From: Cyanophora paradoxa CCMP329
Taxonomy: Eukaryota; Plantae; Glaucophyta
Reading direction: 5' to 3'
Assembly: GCA_004431415.1 (NCBI GenBank)
Contig: QPMI01000015.1
Coordinates: forward strand, 496,001-560,000
DNA: 64,000 nt
This document shows, one piece after another, positions 1 to 24,900 of this stretch. Position numbers and translations under genes: made by a program. The notes under the pieces were generated by a model. That model searched no databases. It was not told where the DNA came from and saw only the letters and a list, made by a program, of their open reading frames with translations. Positions within the stretch are counted from its first letter, which is position 1. Each line of letters begins with the position of its first letter.

Positions 1-138
1 TGCCGGCGCCGGCGCCAGAGGCAGAGTCGACGTCTTCGGCTCTGTCCCCTTCAGCGGTGTGCGATGTGAAATTTGCACGGGTGCTCTTGCAAATTTAAAT
101 TTAAAGCGGACACTGATGACGAGCAGATTGAGAGACCG

Positions 139-1656: not shown

Positions 1657-4600
1657 CTAGAGAGCGATTTGGCTCGCGAACTTGAGGAGGACGGGGACGC
1701 CGGCTTCGAGGTCGACCCACGCGGTGCGTTCCACGCCGTACTGCTCCTCGCTCACCGCCCCCGCGTACTGCGCGAGCGTCTCCGCCGAGAGCCCGCCCAT
1801 CGTGACTGCGCATGCGCGCGTTGTGCCACCGATGAGCGCGATCTCAATCGGCCCCGCGCCGCCGAGCAGCGGTAGCTGGGCCGAGAGAAAGGGATGGGCG
1901 TCGACATCGCACCCGGCACGCGGCAGGCCATCTTCGAAGACAAGAGGACCCCGGTCCACGCCCCGTTCTCCATCCGCAGGCGAGCCTGCGCATTGTGGTA
2001 TGATTTATAAGCGATCAGCGGGGAGTAATGAATTCGAATAAAGGAAGAAGGAGAATGTTGATGCCGGGCGCGCACGTCGAGGCCGCAGAAGTACTCGCGC
2101 GCGCGCTGTTCGCGGGCGAGCTGGAAGACGTCGTCGTGCTTCAGCGTCTTGATTGGCAGGCCCTGCGACGATAATTCAGAAGCGGACAGCAATTATTGTG
2201 CTAGATGTTTGATAGTGTAAATGTAAAATTGAAAGAGGCAGGCGCGCAGTGCGCACTGAGTAGATGCGGTGGAGCTTGTCGATGACGGCGCGCGCGAACA
2301 GGGCGTAGAGGGTGTTCCTCTGTCCGTTGAGGGTGAAGGTAACAGTTTGGAGCGTGTGCAACATGAACGCTGCCGAGTCGAATTATTGAAAGATCATCAG
2401 AATTGGGGCATGCGGCGCGCACAGTTTCGACGACCCTGTGCCCGTGCACATGAACGCAACGCGCGACCGCGAGGGAGCCGGACGCGTCAGCCCAAATCAT
2501 AGAAGAAAATTAAAATACAGGGGCGCGACTCGGACGCACAGTGGAAATAAGGAAGGCTGCCCGGGTGGCATCGTTCTCGAGACACGTTTGCCTGCCGAAA
2601 CGAAGTCAAAGTTATGAGCGCGCCTTTTCCTTGCGGCGTCTCACCAGGGCTGGCCACAGAACAGCTGGTAGTCGGCGGTGTCGTACGCGTGCCAGGGGAG
2701 GGCGTTCCAGCGCGGCATGACGAGCTCGTCCTCCACCGCGACGAAGTTCGTGAGCGAGAACGTCTGTCCCCTCTGCGCGAATTTTCAAGTTGAAAAGGCA
2801 GCTGCAGGTCGCGGTAGGCCGTTATCGAATATTTGAACCTGGAATGTGCCGATCGGGGGTTCGGATGCGTTGTTGTACTTCTGTTAGTCGCCTTTCAGTC
2901 AGACACTAGATGAATGCACTGATCATGATTACCGAAAAGGCTTTGCGCACCACTTCATCGTGCACGACGTTGAAAATTGCGTTCGCTTGGCGGGCGCGGA
3001 ACACATTGCTGCGCCGATCAATAAATATACAACATGAATTAGCCGAGCACAAGCGAATTGTCGGGATCTGAATTGATGCGTACACGCTCTCGACCCCAGA
3101 TAGAGACGCTGAAAAAATAGACGAAGAAATAAAAGAGTAAATTAATTTCGCGGCGGAAGCGGAGATTCGGGGAAAGCAGAGAAATGAGCGGACGGGGGAC
3201 GAGGCCGTTGCGGGAGTGGGTCGGGTACTGGTCGGACCCGAAGAACGACTTTGCGAACTCGACGTTCTTCGAGAATTCGGCCGATGCCTGGTCGTACGTG
3301 AGCGACGTCATCGTCTCGTGGTCCCACGTGTGGCCTGCCGCAATTGAGATAATGAATTCGCCGGCGAGAGCGGGCGCAAGGCGGGTTAGAAATCTAGAAG
3401 AGCCGCGCACTGAGCCAGAAGAAGTCGTCCTTCATCGACTGCGCGGCAACGAAGAGGGGGTCCTCGTAGAGCTGCGCCTTGTACTCGGCGCCCGCCGGAT
3501 TCATGCCCTGGCAGGCGTATTGATCCCCGTACTTGGGGGCGCAGAACTGGCCGCCGTTGTACGCCCACTGCGCATGCGCGGCGCTGGCGTCAGCAGTCTA
3601 CAGCAGCACATGCGCAGGAAAACATTGGGAGGAGATTTCCGAGTTCGAAGTTCTTCGACCTCGGCGCGGAAGTCATCGCTGTCGCCGTTGGCGCTGAAGG
3701 CGCTGCGAATCGAAGCTTGCATGTCCCGCTGCGGCATGTTTAATTTAAGCCTCTCACAACACCATTTCATTTTCATTCTCTGTGCACACCATGAACTGGA
3801 GATCCGCCGGCGTGTTTCGGATTTCGCTTCCGCCTTTGAAAGGGGGATTGGCAAACCCTAAATCGTCTGATATTGCAGAAACAAAAATCAGTCGAATTCG
3901 GAAATAATTCATTACGGAGCTGCATGACTTGCGCACCGATTTGCATGCTGAAGAGAAGTCTGCGCATGCCGACATACGCGCCGCGCGTCGCCCATGGGAT
4001 CCTAAATTCAGCCCACATTGTCCCAATCGGCGCTCGAAAATTGCGGACGCCCCTGCAGGGGCTACAACCGCATGCGCACCAGAGGTTAGCGACGTAGGAC
4101 GAGAGGAAGTGCACCCTTATGTCGCCAAACGGGATTTCGGTAATCGTGAAGAAGAAGTGCATCTGCTGGCGCCCGTCGCCCAACGTCACCTGCGATCGCG
4201 AGGGGAGAGCTTAGCTCACCCGCATCCGCAGCGCGGAAACCGCCGGCGGCTGGGACTCGTCGCACCAGGCCGGCGGCGGGCTGGCCGCCAGTGGAGCCGA
4301 AGAACATGAAGGGCTTGAAGGCGGACGACGCGGGAATGCTGGCGCGGTAGGACGGGTAGGAGCCCGTGAAGAGCATCCCCCCGCCGTTAGACACAGCCTG
4401 AATTACAGTGCGCGAATTATAAATATAAACATAGCGTCTCGGCATTAAGATCGCGCTTGGAGATTAAAACGCACGGAGGCGCCGACGGCGGCGGGGTTGG
4501 CGACGACCTGGGTGTTGGCGGTGCTCGGGCTCGAGGTGACGGCGCCGATCCCGCTCGCCGCCGAGGAGAGCAGCGAGGGGTTCGCTGCGCGGGGCAGGGT

Positions 4601-6611
4601 CGTCGGGTGATGAAGCGCTGCGTTTTAAATGTTTTTTAAACGTATTTGGAGCGCACAGTAGAAGACGACGCGGCGGATCTTGTGCTTCAGCTCGTACGCG
4701 TCCAAAGCCGCCCGCTGCAGGGATACGCGTGAGCCCAAGCACTAGCGCCGCAGAGAATTACAATATGCGAAGTAAAGGGCGGGCCTGCGCGGAGGTGAGC
4801 GCGCTGACGTCGCTCCCGGCCGCGAAGACGATGAGGGAATAGCTGCGCGGAAGAGGTGAGAGGCCGCCTGCCGCGATCAGCGGCAAGCTTAAGGTGCAGG
4901 CACCGCGGGAGGCCGGTCGCGGGATCCGTCAGGACGAGAGCGGGAGAGAGCGGCACAGTGACGGTGTCGAAAGCGATGCCGAAGTTCTGCGGGCCAGCGG
5001 AAATTCGAGTTTGTCTGACACGAAACCGGCGCATCGCGCACCCAGAGGTTCATGCGGACGCCCTTGTAGCTGTCGGCGTTGGCGCTGGAGGTGACCACGA
5101 GCGCGCGGGACAGGACGTCGTTTGAAGTCTGCGCAGGACACGCATGTGTAAGAAGCCGAATTAAATCAACTTGCGCAAATACAAAGCTTTTCTGCGTGCG
5201 CACTGCAGCTGGCACGGTTCTCGAGGCTGTTGGCGAAGTACTGGTGCCAGTGCTGCCAGTCGTACCCGTGCTAGAGGAGCTCGAGCCGGTCGAGGTCCCC
5301 GACGTGTCGCCGGTCGACTGGAATCGCACTCGCATGTAGTCGATTGTGATCGCGTCCGCTTTCAGAGCTGCGCAAGCAATTGCAAGTTCGTCTCAGATTC
5401 AATTACAAAGTAATGTAATAGTGGTTATCAAGCTCGCGAGTCGCGATTAGTTTCCGCACTGATGCAGGTCTGGCGAATTATGACGGAGTACGTTGTGCCG
5501 GTCTTCAGCAGGTATTGAGATGCGGAGCCGGCCAGAGGGGCGAAATCCAGCGTAACCCACGTCCTGCGCAGAGCCCATAATGGCATCCACTGAATAAGCC
5601 TTCCACTACGTATACGGCTGGATGGGACGTACCAGGCCTGGGAGGGGGGAATGACGGTGTTGTCGCCGAGCTTGACCCACGCTTTCGTTGCCTGGTTTTG
5701 GACCTCCCAAACCCATGTAATCCAGCCCCCGTCCGGGCCTGCATTCGTCCGCGCATGCCATAAATTATAAGCATCTCAAAGGTGCACCTCGCATCGCAAC
5801 TGAAAACTGCAGAGCGGAGAGGGTCTGTGCCGCTACGTCGGTAATGGCGGGAAGGTCAAGCTGGATCAATGTGTCAGAGGCCGTCGCTTGGGTGGAGCCC
5901 GAATAAAACTGCAGAGAAATAAAACATGATCTTTGCAAATAGAAGGGTAAGAGCAAGTGTCAGCTTTCGTTCGAAAGCGTACCGCCACGTAATCCTCCCA
6001 GCAGTCCTGAGAGCCAGTGCAGGCGGCTCCTTTCGTTTGCAGAGCCTTGACGCCAGCGCTCGAGCCAGAGATAGTGCCCTGGCATTTTCAAGGTCGCGAA
6101 AGATCCTTCAATATTCAAGCGACAGAGATGCCACGCATATATATAGCTTACAACTGTTGCGGTCAGCTTTGCGGGGAGAGCATCGACGGTGGAGGTCGTT
6201 TGCAAGAGGGCTCGCCCTGTGCTCGCCAACCCAGAGCCCGGGCCCGCGGCTGACGATGCAATGCGGCCGACGAAGGCGTATGTGTACGGCAGCTCAAGAT
6301 CCGCGCGATAAGCGTGGGCGGCCTCCTGTCCGGCCTCCGGCCCTAATCGTAGGCGCACGACCACGTTCAGGGTTTCGGTTGACGATATATCGATTGCATG
6401 CGCAAGTGCAAGTGATCCTCGAAATGCAATTTTAAGTCTTAAAGGATCTCGATATATATACATCATGATGGCAGATCTTGACCGTACCGTCGCTTCCCAG
6501 CGCGGCGCCTAGGCCTGCAGCTGACCATGTGGTCGCCGCCGCTCCAAGATCGAAGCTTAAGAGTACTAGTAAGGCAAGCGCGAGAAGCGCCGCCACGTGC
6601 ACGACGCGCAT
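1657..6611 (-). CDS. Secreted Agd3-like (CE18-type) polysaccharide deacetylase, paralogue A, with one N-terminal ~165-aa module and an S/T/G linker
   Basis: Signal peptide MRVVHVAALLALALLVLL. Spliced exons give RALVVTSS...ALDAYELKHKIRRVVFY, DGRQQMHFFF, IPWATRGAYVGMRRLLFSMQIDD, HTWDH, GLVPPSLSG, LVMPRW, AFMLH, LPIKTLKHDD, EQYGVERTAWVDL...IAL*. This motif order is collinear with fungal Agd3 as I recall it. Confidence 0.85.
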
Positions 6612-7334
6612 GCCGAAGCTCGCGGGCTGCAGGTTCTGTCTTCGAATTCGCGGAGCGCGCCTTGCCTCCATTCGGCGCGCTGCCTGCGAATGCTGCAGCT
6701 GTCGCTATAGCTAGCTGGCCTGGAGGAATTGGAATGTGGGTCAGCCTCACCGTGGCGCGCCGCAGAGCTAGCCTCGCGCCTCGTCGCGAACCGAGAAGGC
6801 GCGTCGGGGTGACGTCGCGCCGGGAAGGTGACATCGAAAACCAGTTCACATGCGAATCAATGATAGACTAACCGGCACGAAACCGGCATTCAATCGTTGA
6901 CCGGTGCGAAATGTGGTTTTTCATGTTCCCGGTTTAAATTTCCATAGCATGACAGCGAGGAGCCTCGAATCCTCGATCGAGCCCGGAGCTCGCTCCAAGC
7001 GAAGCGATGTAGGAACGTCATATATATCCTCTCGACCACTTTTCGGCACTCAAAAAATTTCCGCCAGATCGCCAGAGCTAGGCCGCGGCCGCGAGCTCCG
7101 AATCGACCCTCTAAACCATTTTCGAGTTCGCCGTACGCGTGCATTTCGTTTCAAAGTTTTCCCGCACTTCTCGCCGCCAGACTGGCCATGACATGTCCAT
7201 GCCATGATGGACCACGTGCACTTTCTGAGGAGCGCCTCGCTTCGAGGGCGCCGCGGCCGGTCCGCCGGGGGCCCGCACGTGCAAAGCGAAACCACTTTTA
7301 ACTTGAACCACTTTTCGACAGCAGCTACGTCTAT

Positions 7335-7407
7335 GCAGCAGCAGCATGGAGCAGCAGCAGCAGCCGCCGCCGCTGAGCAGCAGCAGTAGCAGCAGCAGCG
7401 CTAGCAC
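7335..7407. repeat. Imperfect (CAG)n microsatellite between the divergent deacetylase genes
   Basis: Runs of gcagcagcag interrupted by a few other triplets. Confidence 0.8.
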
Positions 7408-7545
7408 CAGCTGGCAGGAGCAGCGGAAGCAGCGCGAACAGCGGCAACGTTTACTGAGGTACTCTATCGTGAGCTCTAGAGAGCGCGAACGACAGTCGAC
7501 ATCATAGGATTTCGCGGCGGGTCTAGAAGCAGCAGACCGGCCGCG

Positions 7546-10500
7546 ATGGCTGCGATGCGGGCGGCGGCCCCTCTTAGCTTGCTCGCCCTCGTCCTCGTCC
7601 TGGTGGCCTCGTGTGCGGGGCCTTCGGAGGCCGCCGGCTCGCGGTACGCGCGCACGCACGATCGCGGCCATTCGGCAGCGGCTCCACCCTCGCAAGGAGG
7701 AGCTGGCCATGGCCCCGCTGATGCCAGTTCTGACGGTGCTCGCTCCTCTATATATATATTCAGTGCGCTGGGGTTTGGCCGCACGCGCGTTCTGATCGTA
7801 CGCGCATGCACGTGCGCGCAAATCCGAAAGGCTTCGGGTCCCGCGAGACTGCTCAGACGAACTACTTTTACGTGACGCGGGAGTTGCTCAATTATGACAC
7901 GTCGACCTCGGACACCGAAGTGGAGGCCTTGCCGGCAACCCTCAACTCTCAATCCGTGCGCATGCGCTCCTCCTGTATAATCGCATTATATTGATTTCGA
8001 CACCGTGCCGAATATTAACTTGAACAACTTGCGTCTCATAATCAGGGCACCCTTTCCGGCTCGAGCAAGGGTATCGAGGCTCTGAAAGCCCCGAGTGCGG
8101 AATGCGACGCTGCGCAAGATTGCTGGGAACACTATGTATCGGTACGCATATACGTATATGGCAGCTGGTTGTAGCATGCATTGCGTTTCAGCTGCCGCCC
8201 CCGCTTAGCCGCGAGTGCAGTTCGTGTCCGGGAGCACACCAGAGACCGCGTCGAGAACCGTAATCGAGTTCCGTCTGCCAGAGAGCATCTCAGACGAAGC
8301 CGCCGCTAAGGCCCTCTACGGTCTCCAGTTCTCCGTGAAGAGTCGAGGTGCGGCCGAGCCCCGTAATAAATTACGAGACAAAGGAAACCCTAGCCTCGAC
8401 TCACAGCGCTCGTCCAAATTGTTTAAAATTTTATATTCAATCAGGGCCGGACGGCGGCTGGATCAAGTGGGTCTGGGAGGTCCAGAACCAGGTGACCAAG
8501 GAGTGGGTCACGCTTGGCGACAACACCGTCGTTCCCTACACCCAATCCTGGTAAATCCGCCAGGCCGCCCATCAGCTTCGGTCTTGGAATTGCGATCCAA
8601 GCTCTTTTCGCAGGAAGTGGGTGTCCCTAGACTTTGGCCCCGTGCCTGGAGAGGCCTTTCAGTACTTGCTCAAGACCGGAACCACGTACTCCGTCCTCGT
8701 CCGCCAGAGCTGTCTCAGTGCGCTGCCGCACGCTCCGTGCATGCTTCTGCGCATGCGCGCTTGATTCTGCTGACACGTCTTTGCAGCGCTCAAGGCAGAC
8801 GCCATCACGGTCGACCACATGCGGCTGCGCTTCAAGAAGCCGGCGACGTCGCCTCCTCCTATGAACGCGGGGCCGTCAGTGGATGCGCTTCCAACGCGTC
8901 TGACGGCTCTTGCGGTGAATAAAACAACTATCCCGATTTGGCAGTGCCGGCGCCATCGTATCGTATTCGTCATGCGTTTCACAGAACAAGTTCTCGGCTC
9001 AAGGGGTCAGTGTCATGCAGTCCTTATCTACAGAGTGCACAGGCACGCAGAATTGCTGGGACCATTACGTTTCGGTTCGATTCTTACACTGTCTTCTTGC
9101 GGAATGACGCTCGATATTAACATGCATATGATTAACATTAACATTAACATGTCGCAGTTCTACTCGGGGGATACGGCGGAATCTGCCTCCAAAACTCTAA
9201 TTGAGCTCGATCTCCCTGAGATTTCCGTCGAAGATGCACAGAAGCTCTCGAACCTGCAATTCACTGTCAAGATGCGCGGTGCGCTTTCATGTAAATATTC
9301 TGTATCAGGTTTAGAACTTTAAAGCTCCAATCAATAAACCGCAATCGTGATTAGGTCCGGACGGCGGCTGGATTAAGTGGGTATGGGAGGTCCTGAACCA
9401 GGTGACCAAGGAGTGGGTAAAGCTTGGCGACAACACCGGTATTCCCTATACGAAATCCTGGTAATTAGAGATCTCGTCATTCACATCGAAATTATTTAAA
9501 TTCGTGTTGATGCGGCGTATTCGACGTGCAGGACCTGGGAGTTGCTCGAATTCGGCTCACTGCTCGGGGCCGCCTCGGACTATCTTCTGCAAACGGGCTC
9601 GAAATATTCTGTGATCATCCGCCAGACCTGCCAGAGTGCGTTGCACTATAGCTAGCCGAAGTGCATTATTGTCTCCCGGTTTAAGCGGTTTTCGCGATCG
9701 TAGCCCTGAAAGCGGACGCGATCACAATCGACTACATGCGGGTGCGGTTCCAGCTGCAGTCCGGCGGCGGAGGCGGATCCGGAAGCGGCTCCTCGGGGTC
9801 GGGATCGAGCACACCGACGCCGCTTCCGGACCCCGGTGACGGATCTGGGTCGGGAAGCTACGACACCGTTCCGGTTCGCGCGCCCTAGCTTGTAGCTATA
9901 TAGACAACAGGCCATGACATATATATATTTGTGTGTACAATTAATCTGAAAGTTAACCTTAAGAGCCGAGAACTAATGTCGCGCGCAATCCAATCACAGA
10001 CGGAAAACGACGTCCTGTCCCGCGCGCTCGTGGTCACCTCCAGCGCCAACGCCGACAGCTACAAGGGCGTCCGCATGAACCTCTGGGTGCGCGATGCGCC
10101 GGTGCCCTCTACAGAAAGAATTGAAGTCGATTTTCCGCTGGCCCGCAGAACTTCGGCATCGCTTTCGACACCGTCACTGTGCCGCTCTCTCCCGCTCTCG
10201 CCCTGACGGATCCCGCGACCGGCCTCCCGCGGTGCCTGCACCTTGCCGCCGATCACGGCAGGTGGCTTCTGAACTCTTCCGCGCAGCTATTCCCTCATCG
10301 TCTTCGCGGCCGGGAGCGACGTCAGCGCGCTCACTTACGCGCAGGCACGCCCTCAACTTCGCATATTATAATTCTCTGCGGCGCTAGCGCTTGGGCTCAC
10401 GCGTATCCCTGCAGCGGGCGGCTTTGGACGCGTACGAGCTGAAGTACAAGATCCGCCGCGTCGTCTTCTACTGTGCGCTCCGAGTACACGATTCGAAGCG

Positions 10501-13433
10501 CAGAGCTTAAATTTATCACCCGACGACCCTGCCCCGCGCAGCAAACCCCTCGCTGCTCTCCTCGGCGGCGAGCGGGATCGGCGCCGTCACCTCGAGCCCG
10601 AGCACCGCCGACACCCTGGTCGTCGCCGACCCCGCCGCCGTCGGCGCCACCGTGTGTTTTAATCTCCAAGCGCGATCTTAATGCCGAGACGCTATGTTTA
10701 TATTTATAATTCGCGCGCCTGTAATTCATGATCAGGCTGTGTCGAACGGCGGGGGGATGCTCTTCACGGGCTCCTACCCGTCCTACCGCGCCAGCATTCC
10801 CGCGTCGTCCGCCTTCAAGCCCTTCATGTTCTTCGGCTCCACTGGCGGCCAGCCCGCCGCCGGCCTGGTGCGACGAGTCCCAGCCGCCGGCGGTTTCCGC
10901 GCTGCGGGTGCGGGTGAGCTAAGCTCTCTCCCCTCGCGATCGCAGGTGACGCTGGGCGACGGGCGCCAGCAGATGCACTTCTTCTTCACGATTACCGAAA
11001 CTCCGTTTGGGGACTGGGGCTGGCACGTCCTTTCGTCCTACGTCGCGAACCTCTGGTGTGCACCACCCATGCCTAATATAAGGCCGTGCCTAATTATATA
11101 AGCAAATCGAGCGCCGTCTTGATGGCGGTCTTCAGGATCCCGTGGGCGACGCGCGGCGCGTATGTCGGCATGCGCCGCATGTACTTCAGCGCTCAGATCG
11201 GTGTGTCCGTCTTTTGGATGATTCCAGCACGTGCACTGGCTGAAAACAGGGACCACTGCAGATGATTTGGGCTTCGCGGATAGCCCCACCAAGGGCGGAG
11301 CGCAGATTCGAAACACTCCTCGGGACTTTGATTTCATGGTTTGAGCTTCTTATACTCGCTTGTGGAGAGCTAGAAATTTGAAGCAAATTAAAGTGTGCCC
11401 TTGAACGCAGATCGCTATGCAAGAGTCCATCCGCAGCGCCTTCAACGCCGACGGTGACAGCGACGACTTCATCGCCGAGGTGCGGCGAACTGCGAAGCAG
11501 ATCTAGATCTAGAGGGCGCCAAGGCGGCTCTGACGACGCCGTTCGTGGCCGCGCGTGCAGTGGGCGTACAACGGCGGCATGTTCTGCTCGCCCAAGTACG
11601 GCGATCAATACTATTGCCAGGGCCTCGACCCGACGGGCGCCGAGTACAAGGCACAGCTCTACGAGGACCCCCTCTTCGTCGCCGCGCAGAAAACGAAGGA
11701 CAAATTTCTTTGGCTGAGTGCGCCGTCTGCCCCCCTGGCCATGGACTCGCGATCGATCGCGACTGCCCCCGGCCCGCGCTCGCCTCCACAACGTTAACGC
11801 TACTGATCATGACTTGCGAGCAGGCCACACCTGGAGTCACGAGACAATGACATCGCTCAGCTACAGCCAGGCGAACGACGAACTCTACAAGAACGTCGAA
11901 TTCGCGAAGCTGCTCTTCGGTTCGGATGATTACAAGACGCACTCCAAAGAAGGCCTTGTGCCCCGTGCGCTCTTTCGGATTCAACTATTAATCTATTCTA
12001 TTATTCTAATGCTCGCTCAGCATCGCTTTCGGGAGTGGAAAATCCGTGCGCCGCGAAATGTTTACGATAGAGTTTGTTCAAGATTGCACTTGCTCAAATG
12101 GAAATGCGAGCAGAGATGTCTTCCGCGCCCGGCAAGCGAACGGCATTTTCAATGTTGTTCATGATGAGACGGTGCGAGATCCTCCTTCATTTTATAATTA
12201 GAGGGAATCGGCATCTCTTTTCGCTGACCTTCCGGATCCGCCGCCCATGCTTCGGTATCCGGCGCCAGAAATACCGCAACGCGTCGATGGCGCCCATCGG
12301 GACTTTCCAGGTCCCCCCCCCCCCCCCCCCGCAGAAAAGAGCAGCGCCGGCGCCGAGCCGATCTGCAAAGCACTGACGCACACCCGCGCGCGTATATATA
12401 TCAAAGACGGGGAAGACCTTCGGGCTCACGAATCACGCCACCAAGAAAGAGGAGCTCGTCATGACCCGCTACGATGTCTTTGACTTCAACAACTACGACA
12501 CTGCCGACTTCGAGCTGTCCTGCAAGGCCCCTTGGTCAGTCAAGCTCACTTGAAGAAATCGCAATCGCAAGACGATTTTATCTTAATTTATTCCTTTAAT
12601 TTGCAGGCGGCTCGTGCATGGACGAGTACACGACTCGCGCAGCGTTCCTTCTCTCGACGGTGCGCTTGATTAGCCGCAGTACTTCCCTTTATCCGATTTA
12701 CATTGAGCTAATCGAGTCTGAACAGTTCCGAATCAATTGCAAGCACCTTTGATTCTATTGTGCGATGGAGTGCGATGCGCATTTCTGAAGTTCGCGCACG
12801 TGCAGCCTTCATGGTGCACATCCTGCAGACCGTGCCGTTTACACTGGACGGGAAGCTGACGACGCTGTACGAATTGTATGTGCGCCAAACTATCGAGAAG
12901 GTCCACCGCATCTACACGGTCCGCGCGATACGATGGCGATATCGATATCCCTTTTGTCGTTCGCATTAAGATTTGAGCCTGCGCATGCCTCAATTGACGT
13001 CATCTCTTCGCAGGGCCTTCCGGTCAAGACGCTGAAGCAGGACGACATCTTTCAGATCGCGCGCGACCACCGCGCCCGCGAGTTCGACTGCGGTCTCGAT
13101 GTGCGCTAGCACTAGCGCTCGCGATCGTCGCCATCGCGTAGCTATAGCCTGCGTTCGTTTTATTTCGCACTCTCAGGCGCGCCTGCGGATGGAGGACGGG
13201 GCGTGGACTGGGATCCTGCTCTCGTCGCAGAAGAGCTGCCGCGTGCCCGGTGAGAGCGCCTTATTCTTTTCCCACTTCCATTTTCTGTCCCTTGCTGATC
13301 GTGATTTCGTCTGGCGGTTATTTCAGTTACGATGACCGGCCTCTCGGCGGAGACGCTCTCGCGGTACGCCGGCACCGTCGCTGTGGAGCAGTACGGAGTG
13401 GACCGCACCGCGGAGATAACAAACGTTATCTAG
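7546..13433 (+). CDS. Secreted Agd3-like (CE18-type) deacetylase, paralogue B, with two N-terminal modules; C-terminus appears shortened
   Basis: Signal peptide MAAMRAAAPLSLLALVLVLVASCAG; modules at ~7900-8840 and ~8870-9750; then AQIDD (split by an intron at ~11200-11260), HTWSH, GLVPPSLSG, LVMTRY, AFMVH, LPVKTLKQDD, EQYGVDRTAEITNVI*. Intron positions match paralogue A. Confidence 0.85.
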
Positions 13434-13849
13434 CAGGTGCTGTAGCTGTACTGTAGGCCGCCGAGTCGTCTCCAGAACGTAGAATGCGCGTGGCATGACG
13501 AGCTGCACTGTCCGAGATGCCCGCGGCCGCTTGTTGAGTCGTCGAATCGCGGCTGCGGTGCGCTCTGAATTCGAACTATAGCTATCTACTATGGGGGGCG
13601 CGGTAAAGGGTGGGGGGCCGCGGTGTTGTGCCGGTCGTCGCCGTCGCCGCCAGCCGAAGTCCAGCTCCGGATCCAGCCGATATGTACATGTACAGGACGA
13701 TCACGAGACGCCGCGCTCCAACGCGCTCCAAGACCTGCCCCGCCCCCCCCCCCCCCCCCCCCCCCCTCCCCGGCCCCCCCGTCGACGCCCCCCCCTCCGC
13801 ATCCCCCCTTCCCCCCCGGCTAGCATTATATAATTAGTAATTCAGGATT

Positions 13850-15693
13850 CAGTGCCCCGGGGGTCAACATGGAGGGAGTGCACGTGCACGTGGCCATGGA
13901 ATGCGGCAGAGATTTCGAACGATGAGCCGACGAGTTGGTGGGCATACGTTTACGTCGATGGGCGGAGCAGCTGCAGGTTAGGGACTCCGGGGAGGTGGCC
14001 ATGGGCCGAGGCGTTTGAACGCTGCGTGGCTGTGAGGTGGCCGGCGTCGGCGACTGATCGGCGATCTTGACTCGGTTCTCTGAACATGTTCAATGAAGTA
14101 TATATTGCCCGATCGCGAACTTCGAACCGGGTCCGGAGTCTATTAAAAGCACCGTTTTAAAATATGAACGCTGAATCAGTCGTTATGACCGCTGAATATA
14201 GAACTTGCGTGGCACTGCGCATATGCATGCAGTGCCGAAGTGCGCGCTCTGGCAACTATCAATTGCGGAAAACTTGAAAGCGACGTTAATGCCGGCAAGG
14301 GCACTGAGGCAGCCGATCGTGACGCACCCTGCTTCGCGAGAGCTCGAGGACTCAATATCATGCATGCAATTGCAACGTGCACGTGCTTCAACCCAAGCGT
14401 ACAATTGATCAAGCTTGTCGCACTTATACTTGACGCTTCCGCGAGTAATTATGAAGACCTAGATGTTCAGAAATGCACATGTTCAGAATTTGCAATTTCA
14501 AAGTGCACGTTCAGAGATTGCAATTGCAACGTGCACGTGGATATCGATTGCCGCGTGCAAGTATCCGGACGAGGACCCGACCCTCGGCTGGCGGTGTTGC
14601 TCATCCGTTGCAAGTTGCTTATTACTGTCATGGATACGCGTCACATCTCTAAATCTGTACACAAAGAAAAGGTCAACATGTAATTATACAAGCATGGAAC
14701 TATATATGCGCTGGCTATACGCTGCACTACAGTAAAGCAAATTGCAAACGAGAATTGGTGGAAATGCCGATACGTGATTAGAAACGCGAAATCAAAGATG
14801 GCCACGCATATGGGCGGCTTCTAATTTCGCAGGAAAGCGTTCGGGATCGGAGGGGGACTCGGCGCGCCGCCGCTTGTATCGCAGCGAATAGGCGTAACAC
14901 TTGGGATCGGACGTCCCTGCGCCGCGGAAGCGATCATGAGGCCGGATCAGATGCGATTGAATAGAATATGAATTTAATTTTAAAAAAACGGTCGCACAGT
15001 ACATGGCGCGGGCACTGCGGCCGTTGGGTACCCGGAGGGGGATTTCCAAGGTGGCGGGCGCTGGCTCCGTCTCGGCGGCGCGCTTCAGGCTGAGTGAGCT
15101 GTGGCTACCCGAGTCCGCAAACTTAAGCCCCAGTGGGGTCAGCGCCGAGGGTATGGATGAGCGCCGCTGCAGGTTGCGCTTTGCAAGGCTCACGCGCAGC
15201 TCGCCCGTCGAGGCCGGCGCCTGCAGCTGGAGGTCGGCCCCGATGGACTTGCGCCGGCGCGCCGCGCCTGCATGCTGAGCGGTGCCCTGCTGTGATCACG
15301 TGTCAGTATCGATATATATCGGCGTCCACCGCGCACGGCGGCATTAATATTCGACACGAAGTTGAAGCAACTCACGTTAACGTTGGCCGACTGCGCGTGC
15401 GCCGTTGGGTCGGCCGAGTCGCGTACGCGCACTGGCGACGGCTCGAGCTCGAGTTCGGACCGGGGGCTAAGAGGCGGAGATGGCGTTTCGCTGCAGCTGT
15501 GTGCCGCAGTGTTCAGCGCGTTGAGCAGCCGCGCGAGAGGAGATGCGGTGGGCTTGCGTTGCAGCGATCGGCTGAACGGACAGTGCTCGGAATCGCTGTC
15601 CAACGCGGTGGGCGTCTCGCAGCGGCTGTTGCTCGCGCTCGAAAACGGGGGGACTCCCGGAAGACTCTCTATATGCATAAAATTGGGCACCAT
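13850..15693 (-). CDS. Hypothetical multi-exon Ser/Pro-rich protein
   Basis: GC-rich open segments (15693-~15378, ~15270-15003, ~14908-14810 and others) bounded by plausible GT/AG sites. No recognisable domain, and the 3' end is uncertain. Confidence 0.3.
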
Positions 15694-16537
15694 CTAAACC
15701 TGACGGCGCGGACAGCCACGGCCGCAGCCGCAACCAAATGTCAATGTTGGAATGCGCACCACAGGCAAAGACGGCGGGCCGACGGGGCGCGCACGCACCC
15801 GACTCGCCGAGTCGATGATTCAGAGCACTGCAGAACAAAACACAGTTGGCCTATAGCTAGCGCTAGCACTACGTAATACCGTACGTATATGCCGGCAGAT
15901 CTAGAGCGTGGTTCAATTTTCTGCTCGCCGAGTCGCGCTAGCGGCCGCGGATCCGGAGCGCAGTCAACGCGTACGTATATATACGTACGAGTATACGTAC
16001 GCACTTTGGCACTGGCAGTGAACTTGGCACTGAACTCGCCGAGTCGGAATATGGCAGTGTCACAGTGTTGGCACCGTTGCAAAAAAACTTGCAATTGCCA
16101 AGTGGCCCTAGGCCTAGACCAGTCACCAGTGAGACCACGGCCCGCCGCCGGCCACTTGTATGAGTGGACCCGGGGGCTCCCGGCTCCACTGAACCCAGCC
16201 CAACTCGGCCCCCGGGCCCCGCCGCCGGTAACTTGCGGCGGTAAGTTGCGGCGGTACCGGTAACTCGGGAGTCGGGAGTCGGGACTCGGGGGAGTCACGG
16301 ACTCACTGGCGGCCGCCGGCCGCGGCGCGCGGGCCCGGCGCGAGCCGGCCGCCGCGGCCGGCGCCCCGCCGGCGCCGGATGATGGCCCGGATCCGGATTC
16401 CGGTCCAATTTCCGGACCGTTGGCCCGCCGGCAGGCCGCGGCCCGCGGGCCCCATGAACGGGGCCGCACGTTTCGGCACCCGTTTTTTTGTTTCTGCATC
16501 GAAACTACTACTACTGGATTGCTTAAATCGCCGCGTA

Positions 16538-16707
16538 GTTAAATTGCCGAATTCCACCAAAACCGGAATTGCCGTGGTGATAGATTGTCGAAACTCTGGA
16601 TTTCTTCTATGGCGCCATACAAAAGCGGCCATTTAGCCCTACCCCCTGAGAATTGCCGTGGTTTATAAAATTGCCGAATTCGGCCTCTCGGCAATATACG
16701 GCAATTT
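16538..16707. repeat. Array of AATTGCCG motifs in both orientations (transposon subterminal-repeat-like)
   Basis: aattgccg x4 and inverted cggcaat x2 within 170 bp. Confidence 0.5.
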
Positions 16708-16844
16708 AAAACATCGGCTTAAAAAGCATTCCTACCGTAGTACAGTAGTAGCTAGACAACCGACGTCTACCTCAGGGCCTAGCCTTTTAGTAGTAAACAC
16801 TAGTAATAGACTACTACTACTACCGTATAAGAAGAAGAAGGATG

Positions 16845-16991
16845 ACTGACACGAAGAAGAGCCAGAGCTAGAGATACCATATGCATCAATATCAGAAGGA
16901 ATTATAATTACATCACTAAGAAGCGGAGGACAAAATTAAGAAAGATAACTTAGTAAATAACAGGAAGCAGACAAGTAAGAGGAACAACAAG
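16845..16991. mobile_element. Degenerate fragment of the element at 37841-39330
   Basis: Aligns with 38264-38390 (actgacacgaagaagagccagagctagagatacc...gtaagaggaacaacaag), with small insertions. Confidence 0.85.
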
Positions 16992-17429
16992 GCTACGTAT
17001 ACGATCGATATCAGGCCTCCAGAATTTTGCATTATAAAGATCAGGGATCCAGTGTCCGACGGTCCCGGGTTGAACACGGACCTTACACGGTTCACAGAAT
17101 CACACTGTGTGTGTGTGCACACACGTGTGACAGTGCTTCACAGTGTTCACACAAGTACAGAATTACTACGGACCCGGGATATCGATACCGCGGCCGGTAC
17201 TGCTTTACACTGTTTACAGTAACGGCCCTAACGGGTCCCTCGATGGGTCCGCGGAACTTAGGACCGGAAGGACTGGAACGTCTGGAAGACTGGAACTTCT
17301 TTCAATTGGACGGTTGTGTTTTTCTCTCTTGGGCTCTCGAGTCTCGATGTTCTTTTTAAACTCGGAGTTTTGGGCTTTTTTGTTTTTTTCAAGCTGATAG
17401 GCTGAATGATCCTGAATCGTGTTCGGTCA

Positions 17430-17830
17430 TGTGGCGGGCCACTGGCGGCCCACTGGCGGGCCACTGGCGGCACTGCCAGGCTGGCGCCCGCGGCCGGCCG
17501 CGGCCCGCGCGGGGCGCGCCGCGGCGCGCCCGGCCGCATGCGCTGCGTGATGCGCTGATCATGCGCATCATGGCATGTGCAGCGCCGCGCCCGGCGCCGC
17601 CGGGCCAGTGCCGGGCCAATGCCGGCCCTGCATGGCCCCGGGGGCCGGCGGCGGGGGCCGGGGGCCCGGGGCCCACTGGGCCCAGCCGCGGCTGAGCCGC
17701 CCAGTGCACTGTCACAGTGTCCTGCCAGTGTGCTCACAGACTCCGTAGTACGCGTGGGGCCCGGCGCCCGCGGCCGGGCCGGGCCCCGCCGCCCCGGCCC
17801 CCGGGGCCCGGGGCCCGGGGGCCCAGGGGC
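17430..17830. repeat. Extremely GC-rich, self-complementary low-complexity region (a similar tract lies at 16300-16470); probable TE relic
   Basis: Multiple ggcccgggg/ccccgggcc inverted and direct repeats; gggccactggc x3. Confidence 0.45.
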
Positions 17831-18174
17831 TACCCTCTTCAACTCCCGCAAGGACCGAAATCGATTCGATCCCCATTTCCAATGTTTCCATCGTGTATCA
17901 TAGTATAAAAGAGCCCGAGCGGGCCGCGGAGCGGCTGATCATGAGCCGGCGCCAGCTCTGCGTCCAATCATACTCCAATGCTGTCCATCGATGTATGTAT
18001 ATATGTATGTACAACGCTCGAAGTCGAAACGTTAACGCGACCAAGTTGCACACCGCAACTGATGAATCATGACACTAGTACTGTGACAAAGCAATCGCGA
18101 CCGTCGGACGTCGACGGACTGCAGCTGCACGTCGACGTCGCTGGTTGGGATTCTTGGGAAGCAAGCTGAAGGTT

Positions 18175-21100
18175 CTAGCTATAGCCTGGCCTGTAGGCCG
18201 ACGTGAACGTTAACTGCACGCGCATGTAGTCGATGTCGATCGCGTCCTTCTTCAGAGCTGCGATCGCGAGGCAATCATCAGCGACGTTAACGTTCAACTT
18301 GGCAAGCTAAAGTGTACTTGAATCCCTTGCAAATTGCAGCAAAGCAAACGTCAACGAAGCGCACTGAGGCAGGCCTGGCGGACGAGGATGAAATGAGCCG
18401 AGCCGTCCTTCGCGATATACGGCGAGGCCGAGCCGCGGAGCGCGGGGAAATTCAGCGTCTGCCACGTCCTGCGGAAAAGACCCGACGCCCAGCATCGTTA
18501 TTTGCGAAAGCCCTGCTTCAGCTTTGTGCTCACCATCCGTCCGAGGGGGCAATGACCGTGTTGTTGCCGAGCTCGACCCAGTCGCCAGTCGCCTGGTTCT
18601 TGACCTCCCAGACCCACGTGATCCAAGCGCCGTCGGGACCTGTATACGTATTAAAAATGAATCATACGCATGCTCAGTTGCATATGCATTGGATGTCGCA
18701 GTGTGGCTCGCCGCCCGCGCCAACCCCACAGCAAGTATTTCTAAACTTGAAGATCGACGTCGACGTCGACATTCTCAAGTTTTCCAACGCCAGCGGGTTA
18801 GAGTTGCGCGTACCAAGCATCTTGACGGAGAGCTGGGGGTCGGCCAGGCCCTTGACGGCCTCGTCCGAGGTGCCGGCGGGCAGGTCGAGCCGGACGATCG
18901 TGCGGGACGCCTCCTCCTCAGTGGCCCCGGAGTAGAACTGCCGCGCGCCCCGATCGCGAGATCAACGTCGCGGTTTGCGAGCTTGTCGAATTAAACAATC
19001 AAGGACAGCTGCGCATGCAGGCCAGCACGCACCTCGACGTACATGTCCCAGCAGTCCTTCTTGTCCGTGCAATCCGCTGACGGCGAGCGCATCACAGTGA
19101 CGCCCTGGTTGGAAAACGTGCTCTGCATTGCTGGTTGTATCAACAAGCTTTAGCGTATGCGTGGATGGTACGTGATGCGAACTTTCTCGGGGGCGAGGAG
19201 GGTCGGAAGGGCGATGACCGACGTGTCCGGGGGCGGCATGGGCGTGCTCGACTGGAAGCGGACGCGCATGTAGTCGATGTTGATCGCGTCCTTCTTCAGA
19301 GCTGTGATCGCAAGCACGAGGTGAGGGTCGAACTCGGGATGGCTATCGCGAAACTATCGCCGTGAAGTCAACTCTGGATCTATAGAATTAATTCGCCAAG
19401 CGCGCGCACTGAGGCAGGTCTGCCGGACGAGGATGAAATGAGCCGAGCCATCCTTCGATATGTACGGCGAGGCCGATCCGCGGATCGGGTAGAAAGTCAG
19501 CGTCTGCCACGTCCTGCACACGCACAAGCGGCAGGCAGATCGCAAGGCCAGTCAGCGGATACTGTATATATTGCACGATTGTCGCATGCAGCTGCTCGTG
19601 ATCATTAGAGCATGCGCACCATGTCTCCGAGGGGTGAATGACGGTGTTGTCGCCGAGCTTGACCCACTCCTTGGTCGCCTGGTTCTGGACCTCCCAGAAC
19701 CACTTGATCCAGCCGCCGTCCGGACCTAATGACGATACCGAGACGCATCAGGGAAACATTGGAGCAGCTGCTGCAGGCTAGGAGCCCTATGACCGAAAAA
19801 CAACGGACCCTTCATCTTGACGGAGAGCTGGGGGTCGGCCAGGCCCTTGACGGCCTCGTCCGAGGTCCCGGCGGGCAGGTCGAGGCGGATGACCGTGCGG
19901 GACGCCTCCTCCTCGGTGGCCCCGGAGTAGAACTGCCCCGGATCCGGACGCACAAGCGCTAGTTGTTCAGAAAGATGCGCGGTCCGTTGGACGTTGGCCG
20001 CGCGCGTTTCCAGAGCGCACCTCGACGTACTCGTCCCAGCAGTCTTGCTTGCCCGTGCAATCCGCAGACGGCGAGCGCATCACAGTGACGCCCTGGTTGG
20101 AAAACGTGCTCTGCGCATGCGTGCGCAAGTAGCGTTTGAATTAAACAGATGAGAAAGCCCGGCGGCCTTGGCCTTAAAGCTTGGTCCTAGATGGGCATGG
20201 AGCGACTCCAGAATAATAATTATATAAATTTAAAACTCGTCGCACGTTATTCTCGGACGTCAGGCTGGTCGGAAGGGCGATGATCGACGTGTCCGGGGGC
20301 GGCGTCAGCGTGCTCGACTGGAAGCGAACGCGCATGTAGTCGATGTTGATCGCGTCCTCCTTCAGCGCTGCGGTATACGTAGCGAGCACGAGGTGAGGGT
20401 CAGAAGTTGGCTGGCGAGATCTAGACAATATAATAGCCGGGGCTCGAGCTCGAAAGCCACGCGCTCGTGCACGCACTGACGCAGGTCTGGCGGACGAGGA
20501 CGAAGTGCTTGGATCCGTCCTTCTTGATGTACGAAGAACCCGCGCCGTGGAGCGCGGGGAAGTGCAGCGTCTGCCACGTCCTGCACACGCGGCGACGGCC
20601 CATCTTTAATATAATTTTTATCATCCGACTAGCGAATCGGCGAGCGGACCATGTCTCAGAGGGAGGGATGACAGTGTTGTCGCCGACCTCGACCCAATCG
20701 CCGGTCTCCTGGTTCTGAATCTCCCAGACCCACTTGATCCAAGCGCCATCGGGACCTGTCCAACGGTTGTCGATACAAATGAGCGGCAGCGGATGCGGAC
20801 CAACATGTTATAGTGGAGCGCCCCGGCAGTTGGCCTGGCTCACCTTTCACGTGGATGGAGAGCTGGGGGTCGGCCAGGCCCTTGACGGCCTCGTCCGAGG
20901 TGCCGGCGGGCAGGTCGAGCCGGATGACTGTGCTCGACGCCTCCTTCTGTGTACATGTACATGTGGCCCCGGAGTAGAACTGCCGTGCGCGCGCGCGCGC
21001 GCGCGCGCCGACATCGTCATTTAATTTGAATGAATCAATCACATTGTTGAGCGCAAACGTACCTCAACGTAGTCCTCCCAGCAGTCGTTCTTGCCGGTAC

Positions 21101-21586
21101 AGTTTGGCGACGGGGAGTGCAGCACTTCGACGCCCTGCTTGGAGAACGTGCCCTGCGGCGCCGAATTCGAATTCGCCGAGAGGAGAAGCTCTACAGTCGG
21201 ACCGAGGGGCGCACCGACTTCGGATCGAGGCTCGAAGGCAGGGCGTCGACGAAATTGGTCGAAGCGTGCGCCTCAAGCAGGGCCCGCTGGGTGGGCTGGC
21301 CGAAGCCTGTCAATATTAACATCGCGCGCTCGCAGTCAGCGCCGAGGAACCGAACTTCGGAAACTTTGGGCACGCGGCGCGCTCGCTCGGAGCTCGCACC
21401 ACTTCCGGGATGCGCTTGCGCATGGTGCCTCAGGCGCGCGTGCCGCGAGGCGCGGGCGCCGGCGGCGGCCGCGGCGTGCTCCGCCCAGAAGCCCGCCAGG
21501 AGGAGCGCTAGCGCGAGCGAGAGGGAGAGGGGGGCGGCTGCAGCCCGCCGGGGCGAGCGGCCTGAACGGTCCGACGTCGACGCCAT
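18175..21586 (-). CDS. Secreted non-catalytic protein made of three tandem copies of the ~165-aa module found N-terminally in the deacetylases (candidate lectin/CBM)
   Basis: Signal peptide ...APLSLSLALALLLAGFWAEHAAA, then three copies of DCW.xYVE/FYSGAT..ASRT.I/VRLDLPAGTSDEAVKGLADPQLS/PDGxWIxWxWEVxNQ...LGDNT/TWQTLxF...LVRQTC/LKxDAIxIDYMRV with identical intron positions; stop at 18175. Confidence 0.8.
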
Positions 21587-21987
21587 GTTCGACTGCAAGT
21601 CTGCGCTTGCTCGACTCGGTGACTGGCGCCGGCAGGCCAGCCAGCAGCAGGTCGAGCTCAAAAGTGGTTTCTGACAGTGGTTCTCGATCATTCGCAATGA
21701 GTGATTGATGCGTGATTGCTTCGCACGGAGCGAAGGGAACATGAAAGACCACTTTTTTTCCGGTGCGCGAAAAAGTGGTTGCGGGGCGCGAAACGGTGGC
21801 GCGAGCTTCGCCCCCGGCTCCCGGCCCCAGTCCCGGGCCCCGTCCCCCGCTCCCTTGTTGCCGAAGACTCGCAGACTTGCAGACCCCTTGCACGCAAACA
21901 AAAGAGGGGGTCGGGGATGCGAGGGGGGAGGGGGCGGCAACTTGGGGGTATCCTAATTCGACGCGCCTTCCGACGCGCCTTCTCTTC

Positions 21988-24900
21988 TCAGCGAAGGTAG
22001 GCCAGGTTCTGTCGGGAGGCGCGCCGGCGTCAACGAGGGCCGGGGGCGCCGGGGCCGGGGCCGGGGCGGGGTACCTCGTCGTCGAGGAAGGCCTGCACGA
22101 GGGCGGGGGTACGCTCCTCCGGCTCGAACAGGTTCGCCAGCTGACGGCAGCCCCGCCGCGTCACGCGCGCTCGGGGCGGGGGATCGAGGGCTGGGGATCG
22201 AGAGGGGGGGGGGGGGTAGAAGGGGGCGAAAGGGGTACTGTCGCCGCGCACCACGAGGCCCGAGCGGAGGTACAGGTCGCGGGCGGCCTCCTTCCCCCCC
22301 AGCTCCTTCGCCAGCATCTGCGGGGGGTATGCGTCGGGCCGCGCCGGCGCGGGCGGGGTACGCGCCGGGCCGGGCCGGACCTTGGCGCAGAGGGCGAACA
22401 TGCGGGGGGCCTTCTTGGAGGGGGCGGCGAGGGTGAGGGCGCGGGCGAGGTACGGGGCGGCGACGGCGCCGGCGGCGAGGAGCTTGGCGAGGAGCGCGGC
22501 CATGAAGAGGGAGGCGCGGGGGAAGTCCACCTCGAGCTCGCCCGCGATCTCGTAGAGCTCGTCCAGGCCCCGCTCGACGAGGGCCGGCGGGAGCACGCCG
22601 GCCTTGGCCAGGCCGCACAGCAGCGGCACGACGGCCAGGCGCTCCTTCTCGCGGCGGTCCAGCGCCTGCGTGACGGCGGCCGAGACGAGGTGCGGGCCGT
22701 AGTGGCGCAGGTCGGGCAGCTCGCGCGCCGCCGCCGCCGCCTCCTCCACGTTGGACGAGGCCCAGTACTCCTCCAGGAGCCCGTTGCCCAGCTGCTCGAA
22801 CCGCGCCTGGCTCACCCGCGGCGGCGTGCCCTCCAGCGGGGCCGGGAGCCCGCGCTTCTCGGGGCTCTCCGCGACGGTCCCGAGCGGGCAGCCGCGCCCG
22901 GCGGCGGCGGCGGCGGCGGCGGCGTGCGGGTGGGGCCCCAGCGCGCGCTCGCTGACGCTGGTGTTGACGGCCGCCGCCGCGATGGCCGACATCGAGAAGG
23001 CGGCGGTGCCCATCGAGATGGCGCGCCTGTGGCCCGGCCGCGCCTCCGACGCCGCCAGCACCGCCGCCGCCGGCAGCGGCATCGGCGCCGGTGCCGCGGC
23101 CTTGGCCGCCGCCGTGGGGCTGATGGGCGCGCCCGGCGCCGCGGCCGCGGCGGCGGCGGCGGCAGAGCCGGGGATGATCGGGAGGTCGGGGCGGAGGCGG
23201 AGGGGCCGGGGGCGGCGGGGGAGGCAGGAACGGGTTGGCGGCGGCGGGCGGCTGCGGCGCCACGGGCAGGGTCGGGGAGGCGGGGTGCGCCAGCGCCCCC
23301 GGGCGGGGCGCGGCGGCGGCGGCGGAGGCGGCGGCTGCGGGGCAGGGGCGGAGGAGGACGGGGAGGGGCCGGGCGGGGCGTGCGCGTGCGCGAGCGGCGC
23401 GTGATTCGCGTGCGGGGAGGCGCGGGCCGGCCCGCCGGGGCCCGAGGAGCCGCCCCACGTGGGCCGCCCCAGCTCGGCCAGGGCGCGCCAGTCGCCCGAG
23501 CCGGAGCGCGCGTGCCCCGAGTGCTTGCGCGGGCCCATCCCCCGCTGCGCCTGCTCGTGCTCCAGCTGCGCCGGCGTGAGCGCAGGGAAGGGAAGAGGGG
23601 AGCGGGGCGCCGCGTCGCGCACGTCGGCGCGGATCTGGTCGATCTTCTTGGCGACGGCCTCCTCGCGGCGTGGCACCCAGGCCGAGCGGCGCAGCTCGAC
23701 CAGGTCCTGCAGCATGAACCGGATGCGGCTCGCGTACGACTCGTCCCCCGCCAGCGATTTGATCCGCGCGAAGTAGGCGTCCAGGCGGCTCCGGTGGGGC
23801 GGGCCCCCCGCGTCCAGCAGCTTGCCGACCGTCCCGAGCAGCGAGTTGATCGCCTCCAGCTCGTGCTCGGCCGGGCTGCTCCCGTCCGCCTCGAGGGGGA
23901 GGAGCTGCCCCGGGCGCGCCGCCTCGCCGGCCGCGTCGCGCTCGGCGAGGGCGGCGGGGAGCGGGCGGAGGTGGAGGCGCCGCGCGATGCACTCGTGGAT
24001 GACCCAGCTCCCCAGCATCTTCTTCTTGAAGAGCTCCCCGATGAACCGCACGTCTGCGGCGGGGCGGGGCGGAGCGAGTCAGAGCCGCCGCCGCGAAGGA
24101 AGGAAGCCGCCGCCCCAAGGCATAGCCAAGGGCGGGTGCGCCACGCCACGCCACGCACTGCCGTTGATGCGGCGCTTGAGCTTGCCCTCCTTCTCGAGGC
24201 GCTCCTCGGCGGGGAGGCCCTCGTACTCCTCGAACTTCGGCTCCTGCCGCCTTCGGCTCAGAGCGGGGCGGAGCGCAGCGGAGCAGAGCGTGGCAGAGGG
24301 GCGCGGGCGGACCTTCTCGAACTCCTCCTGGCAGCGGGAGAGGAGGAAGCGTTTGAAGGTGCAGGGCGGCGGCGGGGCGCCCGCCTCGCCGGGGGCGGCC
24401 GAGGCCGAGGCCGCCTCGTCGGGGAACTCGGGGAGGTGGCCCGAGAGGCGGACGCAGAGGTCCGAGTACATCGTGCTGAACGACGGCTCCATCACGCCCT
24501 GCGCGGCGGGCGGGCGCGGGGCGTCAGGAGGGCCGGCGGGGCGGGGCGGGGCGGGGCGGGGCGGGGCGGGGCGGGGCGGGGCGGGATCGCTCGCCTTGTC
24601 GAAGACGATCTCGGCGATGCCCTTGAGCCGCGACACGGAGTCGACCTGCGCGGGCGGGCGGGGGCCCCAACGCCGTCAGGGGGAGCGGGAGGGGTGGAGG
24701 GGGAGGAGGGGGAGGGGAGACGGCGGGCAGGCCGCGCACCTCGATGGCCATGAGCTGGCCGATCAGAGTGTCGAACTTCTCCGGCGTCAGCTTGTTCAGG
24801 ATGCTGCAGGGGGCGAGGGCGAGGGCGAGCGCGTCGGGCGCGGGCGGGGCGGGCGGGGCGGGGCGGGGGAGGACGGGGGAGCCGCGGCGGGGCGGGGCGG

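Follow-up and report, generated by a model that had tools for sequence, protein, structure and literature searches.

Cationic alpha-1,4-galactosamine polymers have been studied as biofilm glue in the form of fungal galactosaminogalactan (GAG) and bacterial Pel. Here, we describe a locus of the glaucophyte alga Cyanophora paradoxa CCMP329 that holds three neighbouring genes (A, B and C), two of them encoding relatives of the fungal deacetylase Agd3 and the third encoding tandem copies of a module that also precedes both enzymes. The window is the whole stretch of DNA that was analysed, 64,000 nucleotides from positions 496,001 to 560,000 of contig QPMI01000015.1, and coordinates below are counted from its first base. 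Region 1-24,000 was read with all frames translated and exon models were drawn from the sequence, while homology searches were run exon by exon, with natural stop-free read-throughs, or with public protein models.

Gene organisation of the locus

Exon modelling placed three intron-rich genes at the expected coordinates, with exon phases that close unforced. The introns of the three genes comprise 74 of the GT-AG and 3 of the GC-AG type and are 49-174 bases long.

6611 to 1657, minus strand: gene A (public partial model tig00000076_g2438), 29 exons, 930 amino acids, frame unbroken; in order, putative signal peptide, one GH114_assoc module, Ser/Thr linker, CBM87-like domain, CE18 domain and C-terminal beta domains
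5320 to 6190 (approximate bounds), minus strand: the single GH114_assoc module of gene A, five exons
7546 to 13433, plus strand: gene B (public partial model tig00000076_g2439), 34 exons, about 1,103 amino acids; in order, putative signal peptide, two GH114_assoc modules, Gly/Ser linker, CBM87-like domain, CE18 domain and C-terminal domains
7920 to 9755 (approximate bounds), plus strand: the two tandem GH114_assoc modules of gene B
21586 to 18175, minus strand: gene C (tig00000076_g2440), 17 exons, 628 amino acids; putative signal peptide and three GH114_assoc modules, without catalytic domain or membrane anchor

A and B lie head to head with 934 bases between them, and the distance from B to C is 4.7 kb. 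A preliminary description, made from the letters of the sequence, had pictured two divergent paralogues carrying four deacetylase motifs and a third gene about 5 kb away, a layout which the exon models reproduce. For gene C, our model and the public one are identical in 17/17 exons, and this exact match to a Cyanophora paradoxa model agrees with the non-fungal, algal host that had been surmised. Each of the three proteins has a single hydrophobic stretch, located at the N-terminus, which fits a signal peptide and is consistent with secretion. The acceptor of exon 2 in gene A is ambiguous (6342 or 6417).

The cluster extends beyond the window, as another model on the same contig, tig00000076_g2435 (P0121), is annotated with five modules and CBM87. 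This model stops where the catalytic domain would start, and a third enzyme gene located just before the window has probably been split in the annotation.

Agd3-like enzymes encoded by genes A and B

By every sequence test run, A and B are members of CE18, as the preliminary description had proposed. The only significant PDB match of their public models is Agd3 (6NWZ; E 8e-15 and 3e-15 for the two models), with an alignment that is colinear through CBM87, the catalytic motifs CM1 and CM2 and the C-terminal domain, to the last 6NWZ residue. Both Agd3_CE (PF25115, 43.5 bits) and CBM87 (PF25116, 42.4 bits) were matched above the Pfam cut-offs of 27.6 with a public model lacking about 105 amino acids. 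Additionally, the HTWxH exon alone matches Agd3_CE, and the last exon alone gives a weak match to Agd3_C (PF25117, E 0.19). The three-domain architecture of CBM87, CE and C-terminal beta domain is, at the level of sequence, present in both proteins. Membership in CE4 was considered and rejected, as PF01522 gives only a weak match below its cut-off, and the 102-residue gap between CM1 and CM2 and the late arginine are traits of CE18.

The definitions of the four catalytic motifs were taken from the Agd3 study, where the residues are D377/D378 in CM1, H510xxxH514 in CM2, R613 in CM3 and H668 in CM4 (PMC7229062). QIDD, HTW(D/S)H, M(P/T)R(W/Y) and FM(L/V)H are all found in order in both genes, with QIDD arising only after splicing.

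3862 to 3943, minus strand: gene A CM1 (QIDD), with a phase-1 intron at 3936-3867 interrupting the codon of the first Asp
3318 to 3332, minus strand: gene A CM2 (HTWDH), putative metal-binding histidines by Agd3 alignment
2423 to 3108, minus strand: gene A exons 20-25, skipped in the public model, under purifying selection and carrying CM3
2718 to 2707, minus strand: gene A CM3 (MPRW), inside exons 20-25
2356 to 2367, minus strand: gene A CM4 (FMLH), putative catalytic acid
11194 to 11266, plus strand: gene B CM1 (QIDD), with a phase-1 intron at 11201-11261 interrupting the codon of the first Asp
11826 to 11840, plus strand: gene B CM2 (HTWSH)
12461 to 12472, plus strand: gene B CM3 (MTRY), in an exon skipped in the public model
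12808 to 12819, plus strand: gene B CM4 (FMVH)
12608 to 12611, plus strand: in exon 29 of gene B, one base more than in A, which shifts the frame as assembled
4200 to 5130, minus strand (gene A), versus 10000 to 10950 (gene B): near-identical CBM87 exons and introns, a probable gene-conversion tract

CM1 and CM2 of both proteins align residue for residue with 6NWZ. In gene A, the putative active-site residues of the four motifs are D537, D538, H639, H643, R747 and H795. The CM3 arginine and CM4 histidine, conserved in A and B, were assigned by motif, position and the gap in the family alignment; the CM3 exon alone had no significant match. The intervals CM1-CM2/CM2-CM3/CM3-CM4 of A and B measure 102/108/48 residues; Agd3 has 133/103/55, and 95 bacterial homologues range over 75-101/95-126/52-70. 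The first interval of A and B compares with the more than 120 residues given for the long insertion of Agd3.

In the public models of A and B, the signal peptide is missing and six short exons are passed over, with the loss of one catalytic motif; corrected gene models are provided here. The skipped exons exactly fill a conserved block of the Agd3 family alignment, and an unconstrained profile comparison placed two of them directly behind the HTWxH exon. Between A and B, the ratio of non-synonymous to synonymous substitution rates (dN/dS) in the catalytic domain is 0.28 and 0.19, the latter value being that of the six skipped exons. On the strength of this purifying selection and of the conserved block that these exons occupy, we rejected the possibility that the shorter catalytic domain of the public models is the true product.

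For the stretch with the frameshift in gene B, a DNA run gave a contig that spans 12355-13049, is shorter than the window by one base somewhere in this interval and otherwise shows no difference. The extra base is, thus, likely an assembly error. The CBM87 exons of A and B differ by a synonymous rate (dS) of 0.02, while the catalytic parts reach 0.7-1.6 and the introns are saturated; because the CBM87 parts are near-identical while the catalytic parts are old, this sequence pattern suggests that the inverted copies have recently undergone gene conversion.

Agd3 of Aspergillus fumigatus (CE18 + CBM87, 6NWZ; Bamford et al. 2020, PMC7229062) is a secreted protein, as A and B are predicted to be, and has in common with them the order CBM87, CE and C-terminal beta domain, the four motifs in the same order, an identical QIDD and a similar C-terminal strand. 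The Cyanophora enzymes differ by one to five added N-terminal GH114_assoc modules, a shorter gap between CM1 and CM2 (102 versus 133 residues), CBM87 residues W292, W344 and D242 that are only partly kept, and their occurrence in a glaucophyte as tandem paralogues without adjacent gtb3, uge3, sph3 or ega3. Bacterial Agd3-like proteins (Deinococcus grandis DEGR_35400 and the metagenomic P0131) have the same domains and motifs, and the exons map onto them colinearly, whereas identity to A and B is about 25% and the bacterial enzyme has no GH114_assoc module. The HTWxH exon led to the Deinococcus gene, which is located on a plasmid and shares its operon with genes for GT4/DUF3492, a UDP-glucose epimerase and GH114, unlike the Cyanophora locus; in a profile of this gene's relatives, the window exons land in colinear order. 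The best non-Cyanophora match of the catalytic half is the bacterial Agd3-like gene P0131 (L002:10001-12151), with 30% identity. No obvious polysaccharide operon surrounds that gene.

The scores of 58.9 bits to Agd3 and 55.5 bits to the best bacterial protein come from separate databases and do not separate a fungal from a bacterial origin. No close relatives outside Cyanophora were found by related-locus searches in bacterial genomes, metagenomes and viral contigs, and neither single exons against the PDB, nor a feature-based search of the ESM Atlas, nor an NCBIfam search gave anything informative. PelA (CE21) and the Bacillus PelA-DA (CE26/CBM114; PMC13254593) likewise deacetylate alpha-1,4-linked N-acetylgalactosamine (GalNAc), PelA-DA with an Agd3-like three-domain layout, but they represent distinct sequence families, and among solved deacetylases the Cyanophora proteins matched Agd3 alone.

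The text of the Agd3 paper mentions homologues in fungi and bacteria only, with 0 occurrences of 'algae', whereas the accessible part of its supplement lists homologues of Monoraphidium neglectum, Ectocarpus siliculosus (CBJ48647/CBJ32938) and Sphaeroforma arctica (PMC7229062). These are, like A and B, non-fungal eukaryotic proteins and are often multi-copy. The two Ectocarpus proteins (about 1,400 amino acids) carry N-terminal beta-rich repeats and Pro/Ala linkers that resemble GH114_assoc by eye only; if the resemblance is true, the fusion of CE18 with the module would be common to a brown alga and a glaucophyte. No glaucophyte is listed in that part of the supplement, and neither module-only genes nor co-regulation are described. 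A literature search of incomplete coverage found no paper discussing algal CE18, fusions of CE18 with PF14741 or module-only proteins, and GH114 genes have been published for brown and green algae (PMC11468063, PMC11811186). The earlier statement that no such system was described in algae is, thus, correct for the main texts searched but not for the accessible supplement or the published GH114 genes, and the novelty of the locus is partial, with algal Agd3 hits already present, undiscussed, in that supplementary material.

The GH114_assoc module and gene C

The module common to A, B and C, with one, two and three copies respectively, belongs to GH114_assoc (PF14741). An N-terminal module in all three genes had been recognised in the preliminary description, and this part stood, while a reading of the module as CBM87 was rejected: it is a separate domain, and CBM87 is absent from C. 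The gene C product matches PF14741 with 143 bits (E 7e-42) in three stretches, covering model positions 4-109 of 126, and exon-wise all six copies in the window match below the cut-off. The module spans five exons and about 175 residues, with intron phases alike in 6/6 copies, mutual identities of 48-84%, four invariant tryptophans and two more in the consensus. We also considered gene C as the front half of a longer enzyme gene, which was rejected due to an in-frame stop and no CE18-like sequence downstream. Exon 3 of its middle module (19636-19736) is 90-93% identical over about 100 bases to gene B at 8440-8534 and 9344-9444, slightly closer than to C's own copies, a possible case of exon-level exchange.

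A profile built from two module read-throughs had true matches only to Cyanophora paradoxa proteins among 1.84 billion representatives, while the matches P0125, P0126 and P0128 were rejected as repeat or composition artefacts. Further module-only models are located on other contigs (tig00020563_g11345, tig00020563_g11347 and tig00021127_g18869; P0123, P0124 and P0127), two of the three with many near-identical modules joined by Pro/Thr linkers. The stand-alone form of the module is a small family in Cyanophora.

A structural model based on 14 Cyanophora copies is a beta-sandwich (pLDDT 82, pTM 0.81), compared with a pLDDT of 34 for the fold of a single sequence. Its top matches among solved folds are mostly carbohydrate-binding modules (CBMs), with Z about 9-10.5; those to sandwiches of the CBM29/CBM8/CBM22 type have Z 9.6-10.5, root-mean-square deviation about 3 and 119-128 aligned residues. 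The module is, thus, predicted to be a CBM-like beta-sandwich that may bind sugar, in keeping with the carbohydrate-binding-type fold anticipated for the third gene. No close solved structure for PF14741 was found with the module against PDB sequences, a search of plasmids with the module was also fruitless, and no binding data for PF14741 were found in the literature.

PF14741 is elsewhere joined to GH114 endo-alpha-1,4-galactosaminidases, while in Cyanophora it is fused to CE18 or forms stand-alone tandem arrays. The gene C product matches the family by sequence above the cut-off, and the module model matches it by predicted fold, its best Atlas match being a bacterial GH114 protein with a GH114_assoc domain (TM 0.74). 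GH114 acts on deacetylated alpha-1,4-galactosamine (GalN) and travels with agd3 in operons (PMC7229062). Since the PF14741 family is tied to alpha-1,4-galactosaminidases, the locus is connected with the chemistry of alpha-1,4-galactosamine through another domain, independent of the first. Further, gene C offers a small, natural, stand-alone test protein for the uncharacterised PF14741.

Proposed function and alternative explanations

The regions upstream of the three genes share a short motif. ACCACWTT has seven copies in the 64 kb of the window, where 1.0 would be expected, and each copy is located upstream of A/B or C; the six exact ones read ACCACTTTT (9 bases), three per upstream region. 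Confinement like that of ACCACTTTT was seen in 0/2,705 random region pairs.

6612 to 7545, no strand: divergent promoter region of A and B, with ACCACTTTT at 7035, 7291 and 7307 and one variant at 6910
21660 to 21780, no strand: three ACCACTTTT copies upstream of gene C

Because the motif survives in otherwise diverged DNA, it suggests a common control element of the three genes.

In our proposal, A and B would be secreted, metal-dependent CE18 de-N-acetylases. By comparison with Agd3, the first Asp of QIDD would serve as the base, the second Asp and the two HTWxH histidines would hold the metal, the arginine of MxR would orient the base and the histidine of FMxH would act as the acid, while the CBM87-like domain would lengthen the substrate groove. 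The enzymes would strip acetyl groups from an alpha-1,4-GalNAc-rich exopolysaccharide made by Cyanophora and render it cationic and adhesive, for use in the mucilage of mucocysts, in attachment or in a sheath formed under stress. Their N-terminal modules would tether A and B to the polymer and the product of gene C, consisting of three modules alone, would bind or cross-link it. All three genes may be induced together via ACCACTTTT under a condition absent from routine culture. We consider it evenly balanced whether A and B deacetylate, and the modules tether, such a self-made polymer outside the cell. Activity, substrate, module binding, co-regulation and biological role are all inferred, and synthesis of the polymer by Cyanophora itself is suggested by analogy with GAG and Pel (PMC7229062, PMC4817252). 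Cyanophora has mucocysts (PMC6704402).

A broader and more tentative idea, to which we give less than even weight, is that Cyanophora and green and brown algae run a complete but unclustered pathway of GAG/Pel type, with a Gtb3-like synthase, CE18 and GH114-associated binders. In that case, the polymer would represent an ancient adhesive found across eukaryotes, and PF14741 a new CBM family that also occurs as a lone multivalent, cross-linking lectin. If this reading is true, such polymers would no longer be a fungal and bacterial speciality. A conserved and apparently co-regulated CE18 cluster in a glaucophyte makes algal production of a GAG/Pel-type polymer directly testable, as well as the secretions of the wall-less Cyanophora.

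Several points weigh against the proposal of a self-made polymer. No synthase, epimerase or GH114 gene was found in the window, where beyond 25 kb just ten long open reading frames were examined, and the neighbours within 1-25 kb are a zinc-finger gene, a small gene of unknown function and an eIF4G-like gene; as far as the window was tested, the locus is neither a fungal GAG gene cluster nor a Pel operon. No literature report of a GalNAc/GalN polymer in Cyanophora was found. The residues D242, W292 and W344, which bind substrate in the CBM87 of Agd3, are kept only in part: the position of W344 has a Trp in B but another residue in A, that of W292 has a Pro with a Tyr next to it, and D242 lies opposite a gap. 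Against the module model, Eph domains and a phage baseplate domain, the latter sharing first place, reach scores equal to those of CBMs, and the jelly-roll fold alone is no proof of sugar binding. The upstream motif was picked after inspection and may have been inherited via gene duplication. Additionally, no spliced transcript was found for gene B, the only gene examined: across 17 RNA-labelled runs, the share of its words that was recovered did not exceed 0.04. One run yielded two contigs of 151 bases that cross B introns and thus represent DNA or unspliced RNA. This negative is weak, since contigs show presence and not absence, and it counts against the preliminary description, which had itself named lack of expression as grounds for refutation.

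It is unlikely, in our judgement, that the enzymes act on a foreign substrate, deacetylating bacterial Pel or fungal GAG on common surfaces and priming it for GH114-type cleavage. This would serve to prevent fouling, to defend the alga or to release nutrients, and C would work as an agglutinin or a sensor. The cluster has no biosynthetic partner as far as examined, GH114_assoc is an accessory of hydrolases, and the varying module number (1, 2, 3, 5 and more) and apparent silence in culture would suit inducible interaction genes; deacetylation by itself, however, makes GAG/Pel-type polymers stickier (PMC4817252). Rather improbable is also a changed substrate, with the CE18 fold acting on another N-acetylhexosamine glycan such as an algal surface glycan, a chitin-like polymer or peptidoglycan. 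It draws on the roughly 25% identity to bacterial homologues, the altered CBM87 aromatics, the weak CE4 match, and a stretch between CM1 and CM2 that is 31 residues shorter than in Agd3 and has its own Cys-containing insert. Nevertheless, CBM87 and GH114_assoc are distinct domains that each indicate alpha-1,4-GalN(Ac), and alpha-1,4-GalNAc is the substrate of both characterised relatives with three domains, Agd3 and PelA-DA, while N-termini that read as signal peptides for the endoplasmic reticulum would argue against plastid peptidoglycan.

Compatible with the other readings is a non-lectin role of gene C, which we regard as somewhat unlikely, in which the modules bind protein or serve as spacers or scaffolds and the enzymes work as proposed. 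The module lacks a close solved structure and published binding data as far as we found, and non-lectin jelly rolls match it equally well, but it has the four invariant and two consensus tryptophans, is attached to two different enzymes of one polymer, and its top structural matches are mostly CBMs. Very improbable, finally, is a once functional cluster that is now silent or decaying in a long-cultured strain, with B as a fresh pseudogene. The lack of RNA support for B, its one-base frameshift as assembled and the incomplete public, RNA-trained models of A and B would fit decay, whereas A is unbroken over 29 exons and C over 17, dN/dS is 0.19-0.28, the upstream motifs are conserved and the DNA-run contig lacks one base in the frameshift stretch.

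Among the neighbours, a spliced gene at 73-1152 (plus strand), whose open reading frames show a CCCH zinc finger along with Cys/His residues in a RING-like pattern, lies between gene A and the five-module gene. A tandem duplication of about 125 bases, 95% identical, is present at 1142-1390 in the 3' region between this gene and gene A. A small Ser/Pro-rich spliced gene of unknown function (14792-15876, minus strand) is located between B and C, and an eIF4G-like gene (22030-25000, minus strand), in which MIF4G and MA3-like segments were recognised by eye, immediately upstream of gene C. Elsewhere in the window, an open reading frame of 835 amino acids with an RNase H domain (42968-45475, plus strand) is probably a retroelement, and a dispersed repeat, 84% identical, occurs at 16839-16991 and 38258-38390.

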